64,000 nt of DNA from Gracilinanus agilis (lineage: Eukaryota): NCBI RefSeq assembly GCF_016433145.1, contig NC_058131.1:405326875-405390874 (forward strand), read 5' to 3'. Each line of letters opens with the position of its first letter. Positions within the stretch are counted from its first letter, which is position 1. Shown here piece by piece: positions 20,901-35,900 of this stretch. Position numbers and translations under genes: made by a program. The notes under the pieces are model-generated. The model ran no database searches. It saw only the letters and a program-made list of their open reading frames with translations, and was not told the origin of the DNA.

Positions 20901-23900
20901 GGTTTATACAACTTGTCTGAACCTTGTTTTTTTCTCAATTGCAAAATTGGGGGGGGGGGTTGGACCAAATTCTTCCTCTTTTTTTCTCCTTAAACTTTTA
21001 TCTGATACTGTATATTGGTTCCAAGATAGAAGAGAGTGGTAAGGGCTAGACAAATGGGATTAGGTAACTTGACCAGGGTCACATAGCTAGGAAGTATCTG
21101 AAGTCAGATTTGAACCAAAGACCTCCTGTCTCTAGGCCTACCTCTAAATCCACTGAGCCACCTAGCTGCTCCCCAAACCAGTTTATTTCTAAGGTCTCTT
21201 ACCGCTTTTGGTCCTATGACCCTCTAAATTTCATCTGGATGTTCCTCAAATAGGTAGTAGGCAAAAACACCAATATGTTCAGATCCCTTCAGAGCTTGAC
21301 ACTTAATCTTTTAAGTGAATTGTATACTCTCTTTCAGCACACTGAGTTTTTTTCAGCATATATGAAAATTTTGGTTTTTCTCTCATTTGTTTTCCATATC
21401 CAACCCATGTAGCATAGACAAGTTTGGCTTAAAATGTAAAAAATTCAGGCAAAGAGCAAGTATAAGATTGTAATAAATGGTAATAGTAGGGAGACAAGAA
21501 AGTCAATATTTGAACATTTAGGAATAGCCAAATTCTATTTGCATAAGATGAGTACATAAGAGATAACATGACATAGCAGGTAAAGTTGGTCAGGAGGACC
21601 TAGATTCAAGATCAACTTCTGGCATAGAATGCACGTGTGACCTCGAGCAAGTCACTGAACCTAATCCTGACCCAGAGAACTCCTTAAGGTTATAAACTGG
21701 TGAGCAATTTGTGATCTGAATTGGTAGAATGTTTCCTCACTGAGCATTTCCTATACCAATGAAACCACAGGTCTGTCTGGTTAAAAAAGAAAAAAAGATG
21801 AGTTCAGACTGATTTATCATTGAGACTTCTATGCATATTAGTTCCACAAATGAAATGAGGAGGGAAAAGAATACTTGAGGATAGTATCTAAAAACAGTAC
21901 TAAGATATTACCTATAATATTGCCATGTCAAGTGATGATCAAAGAAGTTAATAGATAAGGTCCAGAGTACCTATGATAGAAGGGGAAAGGAAGCATTTTG
22001 GAATTTACCAAATGATAAAAGAAGAGAAGATTTGTTTGGAAGGATTCATTGATGTCTAGTTTGTTCTTTGCAGAGGTTACCATCAGCATGTTAAGAAATG
22101 CATCCCTGTGAGTAATGGCTTTTTATAATGTTTGGCTTTTGTTTCTCATCTGTGGGCTGGGAACTCGAACAAGTTAATGGCTCTAGGATGCTGAACGTGG
22201 GTGAGCATCCTTAGAAAGCTGCCCTTTGGATCTCTTCCAGGAACAGTTGCTGTGTAGCACTCCCAGCTCTCTATATTCCATCTGCCAAAAGACAGATGCA
22301 ACAGGTAGCGCTTCTTCAGACAAAGAAAATGTAAGTGTTCTACTTGTATGGGGTCAGGCCTATACAAACTCACAAACTGGATGGTTTGGGTTTTTTTTCT
22401 CAATCTGCTTTTTCCAAGCATTTTTGGGAAGGAGAGAACCACTAATCACTTTCCCTTCAGTGAAAAAACCCATTCATATCCAGGTAAATATGTTGCTACT
22501 CAAGTCAGTGAATGGAGAGGTGCCTGGCTAAGTATACCATCCCTGTTCTCCATATCAATTGGAGATGGACCTTCTGTGATGATACTACCAAATAGAGAGT
22601 ACTCTTTGCTACTAATCTTTTCTGCTTTCAGCTGAGAAAGCATAAGGAATGTTCCTTGTGTCCTGCCTCTTGACACATACTGGCTATGTGCCTCTGAGCA
22701 AGCCACTTAATAGTGCTCAAGACAACTCTTTAATATGATACAATACAATAAACATTAATTAGGCAACTACAGTGCTAGATGCTGTGCTAAGCTGTGGTTA
22801 TACGGTAAGAAAAAGAAAGATAATCTAGGCCAGTGATGGAGAACCTTTTAGAGACAGAGTGCCCAAACTAACCCTCATACTGCTTGTGAACCATTCCCCC
22901 TCCTCCCCTCCTTACTCCAGACAGGGGAGGAAGGGAGCACTCCTATTGGGCTACTAGGCAGAGGGGTGGATCATGTGAGAAATGTCCTCAGGTGTATATG
23001 GAGAGGGGGAAGGGAGCAGCCCTCTCCTGCTGGTTTGTCTGGGCCTTCAAGGAACTTACATTTGAATGGAGAAAGACAGTGGAGAAAAGGAAGCTGGGAA
23101 GGGTAGAAGAGGAGAGGGAGAAGGTACCCAGGGTGGAAGCATGATGGTAGAGTTGGATCCAAGTGGAAAATGAGTTGGCTGGGCTTCTGAGCCCTCTTAA
23201 AATGGACCTGTGTTGGTAGAGTGGATTTTCTCATCTTCAAATTCCTTATGTCAATAAAATCACATGGCCAGTCCCTATTCTGTCTTTTCTTTAGTTTTTA
23301 AATTTACACTTGGAGCCTCTCCCTCTGCACATGGTGCTGCAGGTCTCCAATCAGTTGTATGGAGTATAAACCATACTGGAGGGTGAGAAATTGGGGAGCT
23401 TGGTCTAAGTGAAAGTGACACAAACACTGCAAAAAAGCAAGTTAACAGTCCTCTTTGGCTTAGTCACAGACACTGTGATGTGGCTTAATAAGGAAATCTG
23501 GCTTTTTCATTTCAAACTTGTTCTGGTGAAGCTATGTCTTCTCTACCAGGACCCCAAGCACCAATATTTATTCTGCTATTTTCAAGCTATCTGAACATTG
23601 AGCTAGTTGTCTGCTCCCCAGAATGTTTTAACTAGCACCTCTTTAAACCATTTCCCTGGGTCTACTTGCCCAAGGCAGTGTCTTTGACCTCAAACTTTCT
23701 CAACCTTTTCTTTATTCCTAGCTCCCTTTTGATACCTCTTTTCAAGCAGGTTCTTTGTTTCACCATCTCCTTGCTCCTTACCAGCCACCCTTCCTTTCTA
23801 TAGCCTTTTTTAGCCTATATGCATGTCATTCTGTCGTTATAAAATTAGCAGCCAAAATATATTCATGTAGCATAATATGATATAACTTTTGTCTAAAGAA

Positions 23901-26900
23901 CAAAAGGATATATTTAAAATGTTCATATGCTATGGAGAAGAGGGAGGAAGAATTTGTTCCATCAGAGAATCAAATGGAAAGCAAGTGCAGAACCTGTTAA
24001 CACCTCTTTTTCCCCTCTCTCCCCCATTCAACACCATCTCTTTTTGTGCAGGAGAATAGCTTTCTGAATCATCCTGGACTACCGACACTCAGGTCCTTAA
24101 GGTTTCAAGAGAGATCAAAAAGACCTCTCTTGTCTCCTATTTCTCTGCTAGTAAGTATTAGCCTTCTAAGCTCTGTGATCACCTGCAAAGGAGTATGTCT
24201 ACTAGAAGATCTGGTCCCATCGCACATTTAATTATTTCAAACTGGACTGGGAAGTGGTAAGGCTGGTGGTTAGAACCAACAGGTTAGACAAAGCAGATCC
24301 TTATTTAAATGAGGGCTACTGTCTTGGATCATGTCTCTAAATCAATCAGGACCCAAAATAATAGAGAACCTGCTTAGACTTTTAAACTTAATTTATAGGT
24401 GATGTGCAATGCATAGATGGGAGAATGATCTAGATTGTGATTTTTTTTTAACTCATTTTCTCCCAAGGGATAGATTAAGTTTTTCATTTTTTTATTATCC
24501 TCCCCACGTTTCCTTTGGATCAGAATTCAAACTTTCTGCATTAGTTCCAACCCAATAGAAAAGCGGCCGCACATATTCTAGATGATTAGTGGAGTTATTT
24601 ATGCTTCAGATTTTAGATCTTTGGTGGGGCCATTTGGTTTCTTACCATATCCTTTTAACCTGACAGGACAACAGAAATTCTATGGAAGGTGAAATGAACT
24701 ATCTGGGAAGCCCCATTACTAGAATTCCATTGCATCAGGATGGAGAAGGCTGTGCAAGGGAGACTTCACTTGAGTTAATGGAAATTTTCCTGGAGAAGGA
24801 AGAAGCCCAGGTAAAAAAATCTCTTGAAAGTACAGTGTAAAAATGGGCTAGTGAACCCAGGTTCAAATCCCTTACAATTTCTGTAATCTTGGGCAAGGGA
24901 TTTACCTTCTCTGGGCCAAAGATCTTCCACTTTAAAAGGTGGGGATTGAGACTAGATGATTGCTAAGCCCCCTGTCCAGCTCCAAACTCTCATCCTATGA
25001 TTCTATAATGCCTTAACCTTTACTGTGCTAATGGAAAAGGTCTTGGGATGATCCTCCAGTCAGGGGTCTGGGTTCTAATCCCACCTCTGATCTACCAGCT
25101 GTGTCACCTTAGATGAGTCAGTTTTCTTGGACTTCAGTTTCTTCTTCTACAAAAGGAGGGGTTTGAATTAGATGACCTCTGAGGTCCTTTCCAGCTCTAG
25201 AACCATGAAAGTATGACACAGGCAATTCCAGTACTCACCTAAATAAACTGACTCAGATTAATTTTACCAATTCTGAATTGTCATTTGTCCTGGAATTGCA
25301 GTAATCAATGGCCCGTATAGAGAGGTTATGCCGAGGAGGATGAATCCTTCTCCTATTTCCTTAATAAGGACTTAAGATTCACTTTACAAGGTTAGCTACT
25401 TGTTGACAATGTTAAGGCAAATGGAACCTTTGTTTAGGTTTTTTTGGGGAGGTGGCTTGGGGGCCAGAGTATGAACTTCCCTTGTTCTGGGCATCACCAA
25501 GTTACCCCTACCTTGAAGATAAACTTCACCCCAGTAGTCAGTCAGAATTCAAAAGAACTATCTAGGTCATTAAAGGAAGCTTATTGGGGTTCAGTGGAGG
25601 GAAGGGGCTGGCTCTTCCAGACTTATAGTTCTACCCTGGAGTTGGGCCCCTTTGCATCCTTTACAAAGGAAAGACACTAAGGATTTCATCCTTCTCTCTG
25701 CACTCACACAACCCATAGAACTAATAGTACTTATTAAGAACAAAATCCTGATTTCCTTCTCATAGTGGATCTCTCCCTTATTGTTCCAGCAACTAATGCT
25801 TAGTTTTGCCATTGCTGTCTCCTTGCTGCTGGCTCCTCCTCCTGCAACTTCCTGGTCTTGGCTTAGAAACTCCTTGTTGCTGCTTCCATCCATCACTGTC
25901 TTTGAGGGTCATAGAACTATCTAGGTCATTAAAGACCAAGTGACTTTGTGGGGACCACATGGTGATAAAAAAGGTTTGTCTCCAAAGAACTGAGTTCCTG
26001 GGACTAGCTTCCCCCTCTCTCTCTAGGCTTCTTTTGTTCATTTTAAAAGGCTAGGTACAGAGGTAGGAAGCCTACTGGTGTTACACTTTGAACATGTTTT
26101 CAGATTTTTTTTCAACACATTGATCATTTGTGCTGGGTTTTTTTGTTTTTGTTTTTGTTTTTTACTTTTAAGAAACACTACTATACAAGGAGGGAAGTGA
26201 AGAGAGATAATGGGAATAACTATGATGACATAAGAAATAGAAGACTTTAGGGGCAGCTAGGTAGCTCAGTGGATAGAGAGCCAGACCTGGAGATAGGAGA
26301 TCCTGGGTTCAAATGTAGCCTCAGATAGTTCCCAGCTATGTGACCCTAGGCAAATCACTTAACCCCAATTTCTTAGTCCTTCTTCTCTGCTTTGGAACTG
26401 ATATTTAGTATCAATTCTAAGACTGAAGGCAAGGGTTTTTTTTAAAAAAAGACTTCAATAAAAATTTACTTTAAAAAAAAAAAAGGCTATGCCCACAGAC
26501 ATAACTCAAGTTTTCACTTCAGGAAGATGGTTATTTGACAAGTTTGGCTAACTTTATGATTCTTTTTTTCTTTTTAATTTAAATTTAAATTATTTTTTAT
26601 CTTATCTTTACCTTCTATCTTAGATTTTTCTTAGAATTAATTCAAGGTTTATAAAATATTTAAACTTAAATTTTAAAAAAGGCAAAAAAGTGATAAAGGT
26701 TAAGGCAATTAAGGTTAAGTGACCTGCCAACGACTAAGACCTCCCAATTCTAGACCTGGTGTGCTACTTAACTGCTCCCTAACTCAATGATTCTTAGGAT
26801 AAAGCACATTCATACCTCCTCATAAAGATATCATCAATGCTAAAACAAGGCTCTATTTGTGTAAACCTAGAAAACAAGAAATTAACTTTAACAAAGAGTT

Positions 26901-29900: not shown

Positions 29901-32900
29901 CCGATTCACTTTTTTTAATATTATTATGTGAAATCGCTCCCTGGGAGGGAGAAGAATACTTGAGAAAACTATGTTTGTATGTATGAAAATATAAAAAGCA
30001 AAAGACATAAAAACTTTTTTAAAAAGAGAAATCATCAGTAATCTTGGAGAGAACAGTTTCAGTTGAGTAGGGAGACTGAAAGCCAGATTGCAAGAAGTTA
30101 AGAAGTGAGTGGAAAATGAGGCAGTGGAGATAATAAGCAGATAAGTGTTTAATTTTTTAAATACTGACATGTTTTGTTTTTATGCAATTAAAAAAAAACA
30201 ACAAATACAAAACCAGGAAACTTGGGAGGGAAACTATGAGTACCCAGGACAGATAGGCCAGCTGTTTCAACCCAATGGCTGTGCTATCTCCTAAGAATTA
30301 AAAAATGTCTTTAGTGCAAAATACATGAACTTTATTTCTGGATAATGTTCCTCACACCTCAAGCTCACTGCAACATAAATAAAAGTTTTCAAGTAAATGG
30401 TCTTTAAAAAGCTGCAGATAGGATTCAGTCTTACCAAAGCCTGAAAACCTCTTGGGTTTTCTAGTTTAAAAGGTCCATCAGAAGTTTGGAAAAGGTCCAA
30501 TTTTTCCTTAAAAAATTAAAACCACTTTTTCAGATGTTAAATTAGTCTATGGTACAACCTGAAGCAGCTGGTTCTTAGGGCTTTCCTCATCAACTTCTGG
30601 GAAATGGCAAGTTATGCCTTGGCTAAAAAAGGCTGAAATGCCATTCTTAAATTACCTTACATTCTTTTTGGGCACAGTAAGTTGCCAGTTCCTGATAGAT
30701 TACTTCTTTCCTTTTAACAAATTAGAAAGCTATGATATAACAGTAGTGCTTGCTTGTGTTTATGGAAGTGGCCAGTCTGCTGATGTCCATTTGTTCTTGG
30801 CTTCTTGGCCTTAGATCATGAAACCTCAGCAGGATAATCATTAACTTCACTGGCACTAACAGTTAATATTTTGAAAAGTTCATGGTATGCACCAATCAGC
30901 TGAATCAAATACACAGAAGACATTGTCTTTACCCTTGCAAAGTTTCTAGTGAAACACTAAACACTAAAATTTGCGTTAGATGCAGATGTACTGGCAGTTT
31001 GCCCTCTCTTGCAAGGAATTGAAATGATTCTAAATTCTTGGTAAGATGAGTACTTTGCTTACAATAATTGAACTGGTTTGGCTGATTCTCTACTCCCTTA
31101 CCTCTCTCCAGAAATCAGAGGCTAAGAACTACCTGTCTTCAACACAATTGTCCTGTTGCCAGTTTTCTCTTGTATCAGGATCACAATTAGCTAGAGGAGT
31201 AGATGGGAGAGGAACTTGTAGTCTAAATGGTGATGGGCAAACTATGGCCTGCAGGCCAGATGCGGGCCCCCTGAAATGTTCTATCCAGCCATTGAACATT
31301 ATTCCTAATCTGACGAATACAATGAGAAGGATACGATACAATGAAACTTCAAAAGAGTTGCCTTAGAAACAGACTGATAGATGAGCATTTCCTTTCCTTT
31401 GGCCCCCTCTTTAAAAAGTTTGCCCATCACTGGTCTAAACCTCTCCAGTCCAGAGTGGGAATTATTTAGAGAGATGCCAGCAAGATGCAGAATGTAGGTA
31501 TGGAAATCCTTTTAAGGCTGCTGGAAGGCACTGCCAGGGTATCATTTAGTCGATTTCTTCCTCAGACTTTTATATTTAAGGGAAGGGAAGGAAAAATTAT
31601 CTTTTTTTCTCACTCTCTTAAAAAGAAATCACTACAAGAAAGTGTCTCAAAAGAAGTCACTAAGCAAAAAGTAGCAATCAGCTTCCATGGCTTGCTTTTG
31701 GGTTTTTTTTTTTCCCCTGACCTCACTTTTTTCTTTTATCACCTTCCTCAGCTCTGTTGGATTCCTTATCCTCTAATTGTCAGCATCCCAGCATTCTGTG
31801 AAGGAATGGAACTGGAGCTTCCTTTCTTCTCTAAGGATTGGTTTGTGTGAGGCAGACTGCTATAGGAGTTGGCCCTGGATTGAAATGGAACTTCTGGTAG
31901 AGACAAAACCTTATGGCATCAGAGGGGAGGCTGGGAGGGAGACACAGTACAGAATAGAGGAGGGATGGCACTCACCCAGGGGACTTGGCATTCCTGAACA
32001 CATGTTCATGAATAGATGCGGTCTATACCATTTTCCATGGAAATCAGACAAGCAAAGCTAAAACATCTGGTAAAAAAAACAAGGACCCTGTGAATGAGAA
32101 ATATTGCTCCAGTATCAGAGAATCTGAGAAAGTCAGAACATTAACTCGGTACCAGATAGTCCTTTTATTTAACTGTTTTCTCATCCTTTATAGGATAAGA
32201 ATTGCCTTGATCTCCCTGCTGCTTTTTCCTGCCCTTCTATCATTTCCTTCCTCAAATACTAGTGTAAGAAATGTTAGAATTAAGCATTTTTTTTTGCATT
32301 ACCTTCTTAGAAATACTATAGTCCTACTGTCTGCCTACTGTCTTTACTTTCTAAGACTGCTAGTTAACTGGTGCTCTTTGGTTGATAAGGTACCACTGGA
32401 GAAGAACATAGTAAGTTGTGTGTGTGGAGGAAGAAGGCACCAACATTACACTCAGAAATGACTTGGCAGAGAGCGATTGCTGAAAAGCCAGGCACTCAAG
32501 TTCTAAATCTGCTGAGTTTAGAAATGGGAGACTTTTTTTTCTCCATCTTCAGGAATCAGATCTAAAGAAGACAGTTTCACTCTATGACATTAATGCCATT
32601 CAGATCTTTGGAGAAAATTCTGACCAGAGGCAGCTGATAGGTGATTTCACCAAGGTGAGTATGGCTACTCCCATCCTGGGCTTCAGGTACCCACTTTGGG
32701 CTGGGATGTTTTCTTCTCTGCTCTGAGAAAAGAGCATTCATGTTTATACATGGGAGACTATGCTTCATGCCTAGTTCTCTACGTGCTCCCTGATGGTAGG
32801 GTGAGGATCCTATGGTGGTGAGCAGCCTAAGGGTGCTGGTAAAGGCCAGGCTCACCAAGCTTTTCTTATTAAATAAGTTACCATGCCCCATGCAACAATT

Positions 32901-35900
32901 AGGGGAAAGTGGAAAGGTCAGTGATTGATGTTTTAAGAAGCAATTCAGGTCCAAGGGAAATTTAAAAGGAAAAGTATGCTCAAAGGCAGCTGGGTAGCTC
33001 AGTGGATAGAGAGCCAGGCCTAGAGATAGGAGGTCCGGGGTTCAAATCTGGCCTCAGATGCTTCCTAGCTATGTGACACTGGAAAAGTCATTTACCCCCC
33101 ATTGCCTAGCCCTTACTGCTCTTTTGCCTCAGAACTAATACTTAGTATTGATCCTAAGACAGAAGGTAAGGGTTTAAAAAAAAAAAAAAGAAAGTAAAAG
33201 GTATATAGGTCAGTGAATTTTTGATTCTATGAGGTTATTTTTTTTCATATGTTAAACTTGTTTTCCATTTTTGGTCTTCCAGGTCTATGTTCTACCAACA
33301 GTGACAGGAAAGCACCAAGATCTGAAGTATATCAACCCGGAGATGGTAAATTTGTTTTTATTATTATTATTTTTTTAAACCCTTGTACTTCGGTGTATTG
33401 TCTCATAGGTGGAAGATTGGTAAGGGTGGGCAATGGGGGTCAAGTGACTTGCCCAGGGTCACACAGCTGGGAAGTGGCTGAGGCCAGGTTTGAACCTAGG
33501 ACCTCCTGTCTCTAGGCCTGATTCTCACTCCACTGAGCTACCCAGCTGCCCCGGTAAATTTGTTTTTGAAGATGGCAGGTATTTTCAAAGGCTGTCTAGA
33601 ATATTCAACCAATCTCCCTTCTCATTTGGCTTTCTTAGCCCTTCCTAATATAGTCCCTTTATAAAAATAAACTGGATTGGTGGGTTCCTAATTAATATTC
33701 TCTAATTCTAACATTTTGTTTTGGAGGTTAAGAAGGCTACCTCCCAACTTTCTCCTTTTTCCTTTCAAAGATGAGCATGGCTTCTGAGTCACTGTCATCC
33801 TAAGTCACTTCCCTGATTTTCTCTGACTGTTTTACTTTTTGAGGTATTTAGGGGAGATTAATTCTGTTTGTTGCCTTTAGTTTGGCATATTCTTTCCTTC
33901 CTTGGCTTCTTGTCTCAGGACAGGCAGCTCTGGGATCTCAAATTCTCTGTACTGTTGCTTGTTGAACTGCACAAGTACTCAGCACTGTGCTCTCCTGAGC
34001 TGCCTTTTCTCAAGGGAGGCCACTGACACTTCTTCCTGGAATATTTGGTAAGAAGGCAGAGTCTGTGGGGGCCAAAGGCAGCCCCACAAACCATGAAAAC
34101 CACTGCCTGACCATCTTCTTCAAAGTAGTTAGCAGGGGCCAACATGGTTAGTACCTGTTGTTCTTTTCTAGGTGGTTGCTCTGCTAGGAGGACAGCTGCA
34201 AGACCAGATTGAGAAATTTTACATTATTGATTGCCGCTACCCATATGAATATCAAGGAGGTCACATTCAGGTAAGGCCTGGGGCCCACATCCATAGAATA
34301 GGAGATAGGTAGTGAATAGGTTTATGTGGAGAATGGACCAACCACCTCATGTACTGCAAGAAGGATCCTCAGCAGGAAAAAGTAAAGATGACAAGGGCAG
34401 ATTGTATATTTAGAGATAGTATGAGGTCTTGAATACTCAGAGCTGAGGCCTCATGCTCCTTTAGTGCCATAGTAAGTAATCTGTAGCCTTAAACAATTAC
34501 TTTAATATTTGGAGACTAGTTTCATTCTCTGTTTTGTGGGAGATTAATACAATTCCTGTCCCTGTTTCCCTTCTTTAGACTTGCTGATTCAATGGCCCCA
34601 GTAACATGAGATAGACCTGATCACCCCAAGAATGGTGGCCTAGGTGTTTTAAAGTGTCTGTGATATCTGGAGATTCTTGTGGGATCTGCTTCTTAGATTC
34701 TTCTCTTCTACAGGGAGCTCTGAACCTGTACGGCGAGGAAGAACTTTGTAATTTTTTCCTGAAAAAGCCTTTTGTTCCTTCTGATACCCAGAAAAGAATA
34801 ATCATCGTGTTTCATTGTGAATTCTCCTCAGAAAGAGGCCCCCGAATGTGAGAATGAGGTCCTGGGTGAGACAGAGGGTTTGGGGTCTGGTTCCCCCAAA
34901 TGTCTCCATGGTTACCTGGAAGTCAGTCAATCTATTGCCCTCACTCCATTGTCATGTGAGTAGCATGAGGAAGAAAGATAGAGAGTGATTTTATTGTTTG
35001 AGTGTTAGGAGGAGATTTCAATAGGGGTAAAAAATTGGGGTTATAACCCTGACATTATAAATAGTTGGTGGAAGAGGAGAGAAAGGAAGGAGTACTGGTA
35101 TGACTTTAATTTATAATGTCCTCAAAATATTTGAATCTCTATTTTGGCTCAGAACTAGCTTGACCCATCTCCCCATTTACTTTTCTTTACTCCCCTTTTG
35201 CCCCCCATCCTCTGGGATTTCCTTTGAAGGTGTCGCTATCTAAGAGAAGAAGACAGAGCTCGGAACAAGTACCCTGCCCTATACTACCCTGAGCTCTACA
35301 TCCTCAAGGGAGGCTACCGAGACTTCTTCCTAGAATATGCGGTAAGAGAACAGGGCACAAGGTAACAAAGCAAGTTCCTACATACAGAAGGAGCCAATTT
35401 CTGACCCTTGGTGAGTGCCTGCCAGCATTCAGCTCCCATATTTGGTCTTTCTAGAAAATATATTTCTTAACTGTGTATCCCTGAGCAAGTCATTTAATTC
35501 CAATTGCCTAGTCCTTACCACTTTTCTGCCTTAGAACCAATACTTAGTATTGATTCTAAGAGAGAAGGTAAGAGATTTTTAAAACAAAAGAAAACAAAGT
35601 CCATCTGTTCTTTCTCTCACACTTAGTAATTTAATTTAACAAACATTTTCAAATGCCTGCTATGTGGCAGGCATTGAAAATACAAAGGCAACAATAAAAC
35701 AGTGCCTGTCCTTAGGAACTCATGGAGTACAGTATTTACATGGGCAGGTGTAATCCCCGTAATTTGGAGAGGAAGGCAACCATAGCAACTGGGGAGATTA
35801 AGGAAAGTTTCATGTGCTGAGCACTGGAGAATAAGATTCAGAGGCAGAGAGGAAGAGGGACTATGCTCCAGGCAACATGAATATTTTGGACAAATTCATG

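Follow-up and report, generated by a model that had tools for sequence, protein, structure and literature searches.

A probable remnant of the Ser216 exon of CDC25C in Gracilinanus agilis and its counterparts in other marsupials

Introduction

Phosphorylation of CDC25C at Ser216 and the accompanying binding of 14-3-3 form the textbook link between the checkpoint kinases Chk1 and Chk2 and mitotic entry. In human CDC25C, the site belongs to an exon (residues ~206–254) that carries RSPS216MP and KVKKK and is both functional and constitutive in the main isoform; we take the nuclear localisation signal to lie at its KKK cluster. Here, we describe the fate of this exon in the marsupial Gracilinanus agilis, using a window of 64,000 nucleotides that contains CDC25C (assembly GCF_016433145.1, contig NC_058131.1, positions 405,326,875 to 405,390,874 of the forward strand; coordinates below count from the first letter of this window). 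The initial annotation of the window, made from its letters, had proposed that exon 8 of the gene survives as a frameshifted relic upstream of exon 9 and that marsupials lost checkpoint control of CDC25C independently of the mouse. We put the probability at about 0.85 that positions 32002–32131 are a neutrally decaying remnant of the phase-0/phase-0 Ser216 cassette exon of CDC25C, which is skipped in marsupials; an effect on checkpoint control would follow from the motif that is missing.

The closest described system is that of the mouse. When Chk1, Chk2, C-TAK1 or another kinase phosphorylates Ser216, the 14-3-3 site is formed and CDC25C is retained in the cytoplasm (PMC7268735). Mouse CDC25C has no Ser216 equivalent (PMC5247581), as the initial annotation had also stated, and it does not bind 14-3-3 according to unpublished data of the authors of PMC4890593. 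Other phosphorylation sites have been suggested to act in the mouse protein (PMC5247581), and Cdc25c-null mice are mentioned as viable in citing passages of PMC5247581 and PMC9863197.

Results

The coding part of CDC25C occupies 14784–37292 on the forward strand, on which all features given below also lie, its exons having been mapped by tblastn with human and reptile CDC25C. The public 410-aa Gracilinanus agilis M-phase inducer phosphatase 3 (P0184) matches these exons at 100% identity in tblastn and is identical to their spliced translation over the joined coding exons. In this product, exon 7 (24667–24810), which ends in phase 0 at ..GAA GCC CAG|gtaaaa, is joined directly to exon 9 (32553–32654, ..LIGDFTK), which is in phase 0 at both ends, and the junction of 24810 with 32553 is found in P0184 as EKEEAQ|ESDLKK. 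The public annotation already contains the intact 410-aa protein that skipping between two phase-0 exons had been expected to leave. The last exon retrieves CDC25C proteins and the top matches of P0184 are all CDC25C, not CDC25A or CDC25B, which supports orthology. The catalytic rhodanese domain of CDC25 is present, with the HC(X5)R active-site loop at ~34813 and Pfam PF00581 on residues 254–355 of P0184.

The absence of the Ser216 exon extends to the other marsupial proteins. A mixed profile made from the exon pieces of the window retrieved CDC25C models from 12 species (a rodent-protein query returned placentals only), namely Gracilinanus, Monodelphis, Sarcophilus, Sminthopsis, Antechinus, Macrotis, Trichosurus, Petaurus, Vombatus, Phascolarctos, Notamacropus and Dromiciops, which span Didelphimorphia, Microbiotheria, Dasyuromorphia, Peramelemorphia and Diprotodontia. 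The models came from RefSeq, GenBank third-party entries and Ensembl/UniProt, with Monodelphis represented by X1–X3 plus Ensembl/UniProt and Sarcophilus by both RefSeq and GenBank; of the nine 90% clusters, six were covered with every listed isoform and three by their representative only. All of these models are without the exon and join its neighbours as ..E[EQ]E[AV][QK]|ES[DEN].K[KR]T. The marsupial-wide scope proposed at the outset therefore stands in 12 species of five orders, and the relics compared below, from four orders, share three lesions.

Two isoforms of 410 aa, Notamacropus X1 (P0192) and koala X2 (P0280), skip exon 9 as well (..EQEAK|VY[MV]LPTVTGKHQ..), so that the region linking the N-terminal part to the catalytic domain is alternatively spliced in marsupials.

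The relic at 32002–32131 is 130 nt long if counted from the long-form acceptor and 124 nt long if counted from 32008, and 421 nt separate its end from the start of exon 9; the position first assigned to it was right and the distance of 420 nt was one short. Three-frame translation (31990–32160) recovered the protein strings by which it had been recognised, that is, GLYHFP in frame 31990, a 12-letter string in frame 31992 and a 16-letter string followed by GT in frame 31991, and stops occur in all three frames. The former long-form acceptor at 32000–32001 now reads AC, where the alignment has AG in Dromiciops, Antechinus, koala and the placental Condylura, and the second ancestral acceptor position (32006–32007) reads TC, so there is no AG at either; the initial description of a 124-nt relic (32008–32131) with stops and no AG at its ancestral start was accurate in these points. 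At the former donor (32132–32137), now GTCAGA, the GT is retained and the C at +3 departs from the GTRAGT consensus. Condylura, Antechinus and koala have GTAAGA at this donor, which is deleted in Dromiciops. Use of a cryptic AG at 32014–32015 together with the GT at 32132 would define an exon of 116 nt reading MRSIPFSME...TRTL*, with a stop after 25 codons; because this exon ends prematurely, the cryptic AG offers no rescue.

The direct similarity between the relic and a placental exon is weak. In Smith–Waterman local alignments, with shuffles, of the Condylura exon (153 nt, CAG|GCT...AAG|GTAAGA) against the whole 7.7-kb Gracilinanus intron, the best match lies at 32009–32132 and runs end to end, with a z of only 2.4 and one shuffle scoring higher; blastn of the same exon against the intron gives a marginal partial match only, and in tblastn searches with human and reptile CDC25C the relic was missed. 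These figures would suit a chance resemblance in an A-rich intron, an explanation that we nevertheless regard as next to negligible, given that the best match in the intron spans the whole exon, in order and in the syntenic place, and that the resemblance between the placental exon and the orthologous copy of Dromiciops is far beyond chance. This better-preserved copy, through which the homology of the Gracilinanus relic is secured, still has an open frame over 39 codons and aligns with residues 244–287 of rhinoceros CDC25C, which belong to the Ser216 exon (BLASTP E = 4e-8, 48% identity), with two gaps of 3 and 5 residues that match the 9-bp and 15-bp deletions described below. The intron around the relic is orthologous among the loci compared (~1.3 kb at 73–79% identity), and a five-species alignment of the exon extends from acceptor to donor. 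The relic is thus similar to the ancestral exon and syntenic with it, between the same flanking exons. Its human orthologue has those flanking exons and the same phase 0/0, and the two have recognisable ..NRS.LY.., ..KLKQ.V.. and ..K.CSS..E.EK|GT blocks in common; they differ in that the marsupial copy is without Arg213, Ser216 and KKK and is disabled differently in each order.

The alignment compared the relic in the Gracilinanus window with those of Dromiciops (L002), Antechinus (L003) and koala (L005) and with the intact exon of Condylura (L004). Such a comparison had been proposed as a way to date the lesions, and it separates three changes common to the four marsupial orders from the rest, which are private. 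The first shared change replaces CGC by CAT at 32029–32031, so that Arg213, which occupies −3 in the Chk1 and 14-3-3 motif, becomes His. The second is a 9-bp in-frame deletion with its junction at 32034/32035, which removed the Ser216 codon (Pro-Ser-Leu/Met). The third is a 15-bp in-frame deletion of the placental Pro-Ile-Pro-Asp-Lys, with an approximate junction at 32089/32090, immediately ahead of the site of the former KKK cluster, where the relic has NEK. The initial annotation had placed a frameshift exactly at RSPS216MP (CAT TTT CC|ATG); what lies there is the shared 9-bp deletion, and the Ser216 codon is absent, not shifted. Its 'SME', read as a surviving Ser216-Met, turned out to be an out-of-frame coincidence (frame 31992), since the true ..HFPWKSDK.. 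aligns with ..HSPGKLVK.. of Dromiciops. The relic is frameshifted, as had been claimed, but at other positions. The first real frameshift is a 1-nt deletion at 32053/32054 (AAGCCAAAG to AAGCAAAG) and the second is a run of eight A at 32072–32079 with two extra bases relative to Dromiciops, both found in Gracilinanus only among the aligned species.

Together with the change of the acceptor AG to AC, these two frameshifts make up the private lesions of Gracilinanus. Dromiciops has a 1-nt deletion near the 5' end and a 4-bp deletion that takes out the donor GT, and Antechinus has an in-frame TAG and a 1-nt insertion while keeping both ancestral splice sites. In koala, deletions of 11 nt and 6 nt and two extra bases leave the copy net in frame with its middle scrambled. 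Every lesion that breaks the frame or a splice site is therefore private to one lineage, and all three shared changes are in frame. Relic lengths of 130, 128, 130 and 114 nt fit an ancestor of 129 nt (in Gracilinanus, 129 − 1 + 2 = 130 nt). By parsimony, the ancestral marsupial exon would have been an open stretch of 129 nt with AG and GT, reading ..LYHSPGK.. and not ..LYRSPS[LM]PEN..

One of the two Gracilinanus frameshifts lies in a homopolymer (32072–32079), and this region is read from a single assembly, with one run holding it that may stem from the same sample. The frameshifts and the lost AG could on these grounds be assembly errors that hide an intact and used exon 8. We consider this highly improbable. 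Three other orders, with independent assemblies, share the Arg-to-His change and the 9-bp and 15-bp deletions with Gracilinanus and have lesions of their own as well, and a 'corrected' Gracilinanus exon would still be without Arg213 and Ser216. Moreover, all gene models skip the exon, and 13/13 sampled words of 31985–32150 are present in a DNA-like sequencing run (X24), with the reservation on its sample just given. No other run holds words of the relic. RNA runs contain ~9% of the words of 31900–32700, about the share of exon 9 itself, and carry other organism codes, so that they have little bearing on Gracilinanus.

Between orders, the relic is 69–81% identical, compared with 73–78% for the flanking intron and 86–89% for exon 9, in a small sample of ~120 nt. 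The relic thus appears to evolve like intron, at a neutral rate, which at this length is supporting evidence only. The same comparison bears on the idea that the relic retains a low-level use as a poison or alternative exon, through the AG at 32014–32015 and the GT at 32132, with nonsense-mediated decay setting CDC25C dosage. Both of these sites exist, koala and Antechinus retain both ancestral splice sites, and in placentals, for which many skipping isoforms are predicted, the exon acts as a cassette. Such use is nonetheless very unlikely, as the relic is no better conserved than the intron beside it, a pyrimidine-poor stretch precedes 32016, the donor has C at +3 and Dromiciops has lost its donor altogether; in addition, none of the annotated isoforms from the 12 species includes the relic. 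Lesions and annotation together exclude productive inclusion in Gracilinanus, Dromiciops and Antechinus. The koala copy (L005, ~21110–21270) is the only one that could be included in frame, having, by net arithmetic, an open 38-codon frame between an intact CAG acceptor and a GTAAGA donor.

The marsupial proteins are without the features that the exon encodes. The 14-3-3 mode-1 motif R..[ST].P is found in none of the 12 marsupial CDC25C proteins, whereas human CDC25C has exactly one, at 213–218. Nor do these 12 proteins have a run of three basic residues at the position of the human KKK; Trichosurus is the only one with any such runs, at residues 58 and 336. Pfam PF06617 (M-inducer_phosp, an N-terminal regulatory region) covers only residues 200–247 of human CDC25C, that is, the lost exon, and it has no match in the three marsupial CDC25C proteins scanned or in the vole Microtus, an absence attributable to the loss of the exon and not to non-orthology. 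The optional upstream exon of 33 codons supplies no compensating 14-3-3 site, its ..RSLLSP.. being proline-directed and not R-x-x-S-x-P. A basophilic L-x-K-x-x-S site in exon 9 (LKKTVS) is retained in most marsupials; it presumably corresponds to human Ser263, which has been reported to affect localisation.

The retention of LKKTVS, and the suggestion of other phosphorylation sites in mouse CDC25C (PMC5247581), would fit a rewiring in which checkpoint and 14-3-3 control moved to a non-canonical site and the loss of the exon was functionally silent. We rate this as unlikely, though less so than the other alternatives, since no R..[ST].P occurs anywhere in the 12 marsupial proteins and since mouse CDC25C, which is without the same exon, forms no 14-3-3 complex in the unpublished data mentioned in PMC4890593.

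Several further features of the locus were recorded. The optional exon of 33 codons (ENSFLNHPG...LLSPISLL), an intact cassette flanked by a good AG and GTAAGT, lies at 24052–24150. Monodelphis X1 (443 aa) and most models from Australian marsupials include it, whereas the 410-aa Gracilinanus model omits it, probably through alternative splicing or under-annotation. In the intron between exons 10 and 11, positions 33967–34047 are a partial pseudo-copy of exon 13 with an in-frame stop, 77% identical over 83 nt to 35265–35347. The loci of Dromiciops, Antechinus and koala contain orthologues of this pseudo-copy and that of Condylura has none, which indicates an old, marsupial-wide intragenic duplication. 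In the bilby (Macrotis), a gene for a 426-aa protein with an SLBP_RNA_bind domain lies directly upstream of CDC25C, head-to-head with it.

Discussion

The relic between exons 7 and 9 is homologous to the Ser216 exon, syntenic with it, disabled by an acceptor changed from AG to AC, a 1-nt deletion, two extra bases and stops in all frames, and absent from every marsupial protein model retrieved. Exon pseudogenisation, as first proposed, is thus upheld. The accompanying view that pseudogenisation was what removed checkpoint control fares less well, because the site was lost through shared in-frame changes and the disabling lesions are private. In the common marsupial ancestor, Arg213 and Ser216 would already have been removed by a substitution and two in-frame deletions, with frame and splice sites still intact; each order would then have gained its own frameshifts, stops or splice-site losses. 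The loss itself would go back to the stem of the marsupials or to the root of their crown group, and use of the exon would have ended around that root or on several later occasions. A dead exon would yield two in-frame indels out of two shared ones in about 1 case in 10 or fewer. This points to a loss of the phospho-site from an exon that was still coding, but is no proof of it. That relics in four orders make such a sequence of events readable, with a site deleted in frame before its exon was disabled, is unusual.

In the marsupials, the donor after 24810 (Gracilinanus coordinates) would be spliced straight to the acceptor before 32553 with the frame kept, giving a phosphatase that should be catalytically intact, of 410 aa here and 443–444 aa with the optional upstream exon, and that would have neither the 14-3-3 mode-1 site nor the KKK cluster. 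From the missing motif, we infer a loss of checkpoint control, in that marsupial CDC25C would not be held inactive in the cytoplasm through phosphorylation at the Ser216 site and 14-3-3. Arrest in G2 would then rely on the control of CDC25A and CDC25B, on Wee1/Myt1, on p53-dependent repression and possibly on the LKKTVS site, as is believed for the mouse. The physiological consequence may be small, given the mouse precedent with its viable knockouts.

Several points weigh against the reading of 32002–32131 as a decaying, skipped exon with consequences for the checkpoint. Genomic DNA was compared from four marsupial lineages, and the lesions specific to Gracilinanus were read from one assembly. 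The case for skipping in marsupials is built from gene models and lesions, and it would have to be qualified for koala, in which occasional in-frame inclusion could in principle take place, though no annotated koala isoform has the exon. Finally, 14-3-3 can bind non-canonical sites, so a missing motif does not prove missing binding.

A decaying Ser216 exon in marsupials matters in several respects. A whole mammalian infraclass, as far as the marsupials examined represent it, would be without the Ser216 site, besides mouse-like rodents and bats, which supports the view that the Ser216/14-3-3 link is dispensable and redundant with the control of CDC25A, CDC25B and Wee1. Phospho-Ser216 reagents, and conclusions drawn with them, would not carry over to the laboratory opossum or other marsupial models, as is the case for the mouse. 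Literature searches pairing CDC25C with opossum or marsupial found no paper on the marsupial loss.

Among other vertebrates, protein models show RSPS[ML]P to be kept in primates, carnivores, afrotheres, xenarthrans, eulipotyphlans, reptiles, a frog and fish, and the placental exon has 49–51 codons in phase 0/0. As most placental orders and non-mammals keep the motif, the exon is ancestral and its loss in rodents is an event separate from that in marsupials, in line with the independence that the initial annotation had claimed. The motif itself appears evolutionarily soft even where the exon survives, judging from the protein models. The sloth Choloepus didactylus (P0126) reads LYHSPSMPE, with the same Arg213-to-His change as marsupials and with Ser216 retained, and camelids, whales and deer (P0100, P0121, P0128) read RS[FS]SLPD, in which Pro215 is replaced and the +2 Pro is kept. 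In afrotherian models (P0205, P0120, P0095, P0108, P0166), the exon ends early (..KDNPIPDQ|GLGLKK..), with RSPSMP kept and the KKK tail absent, which suggests an alternative donor inside the Ser216 exon.

The exon is missing from the only or X1 isoforms of myomorph, heteromyid, geomyid and ctenodactylid rodents. Their Cdc25c resembles that of marsupials in that the same flanking exons are joined (..EDQ..K|.L.LKK..), with no RSPS and no PF06617 match; it differs in being an independent loss inside placentals, known here from protein models. Squirrels have a degenerate version of the exon, and a Urocitellus model, labelled LOW QUALITY, reads ..RSCQDHSPSMPEN.., with the −3 Arg lost; squirrels thus seem to show the rodent loss at an intermediate stage. 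Among the ground squirrel proteins (P0168, P0167, P0117), one Ictidomys isoform has unrelated sequence at the position of the Ser216 exon and other isoforms skip it.

Bat CDC25C is also like that of marsupials, the exon being absent from all proteins returned (Pteropus, Myotis, Eptesicus, Rhinolophus, Glossophaga and X1 of Pipistrellus kuhlii and Molossus molossus), and looks like another independent loss. The difference is that marsupials carry a recognisable relic, whereas none was detected by blastn or tblastn between the flanking exons of the Pipistrellus kuhlii locus (L006, 6070–14158). A tentative extension, which we hold to be possible but doubtful, is that the Ser216 brake did not go as a by-product of exon death but was removed first in stem marsupials, by Arg213-to-His and a precise 3-codon deletion in an exon that was still spliced and open, after which the exon was no longer needed and decayed separately in four or more orders; taken together with the separate losses in rodents and bats, 14-3-3 control of CDC25C would then be a repeatedly discarded and possibly counter-selected module of the mammalian G2/M checkpoint.

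The exon 7–exon 9 junction of marsupials is also seen, in the same frame, in predicted skipping isoforms of felids, elephant, armadillo, loris and raccoon dog, from which it follows that the ancestral exon was a skippable cassette. These placentals keep an intact exon and a full-length isoform, whereas in marsupials only skipping gives protein. The loss is real but only moderately surprising in view of mouse-like rodents and bats. Marsupials are a third lineage for a known kind of loss that public gene models already embody; what is new is that a relic survives, that it occurs across marsupial orders and that the order of events can be read.

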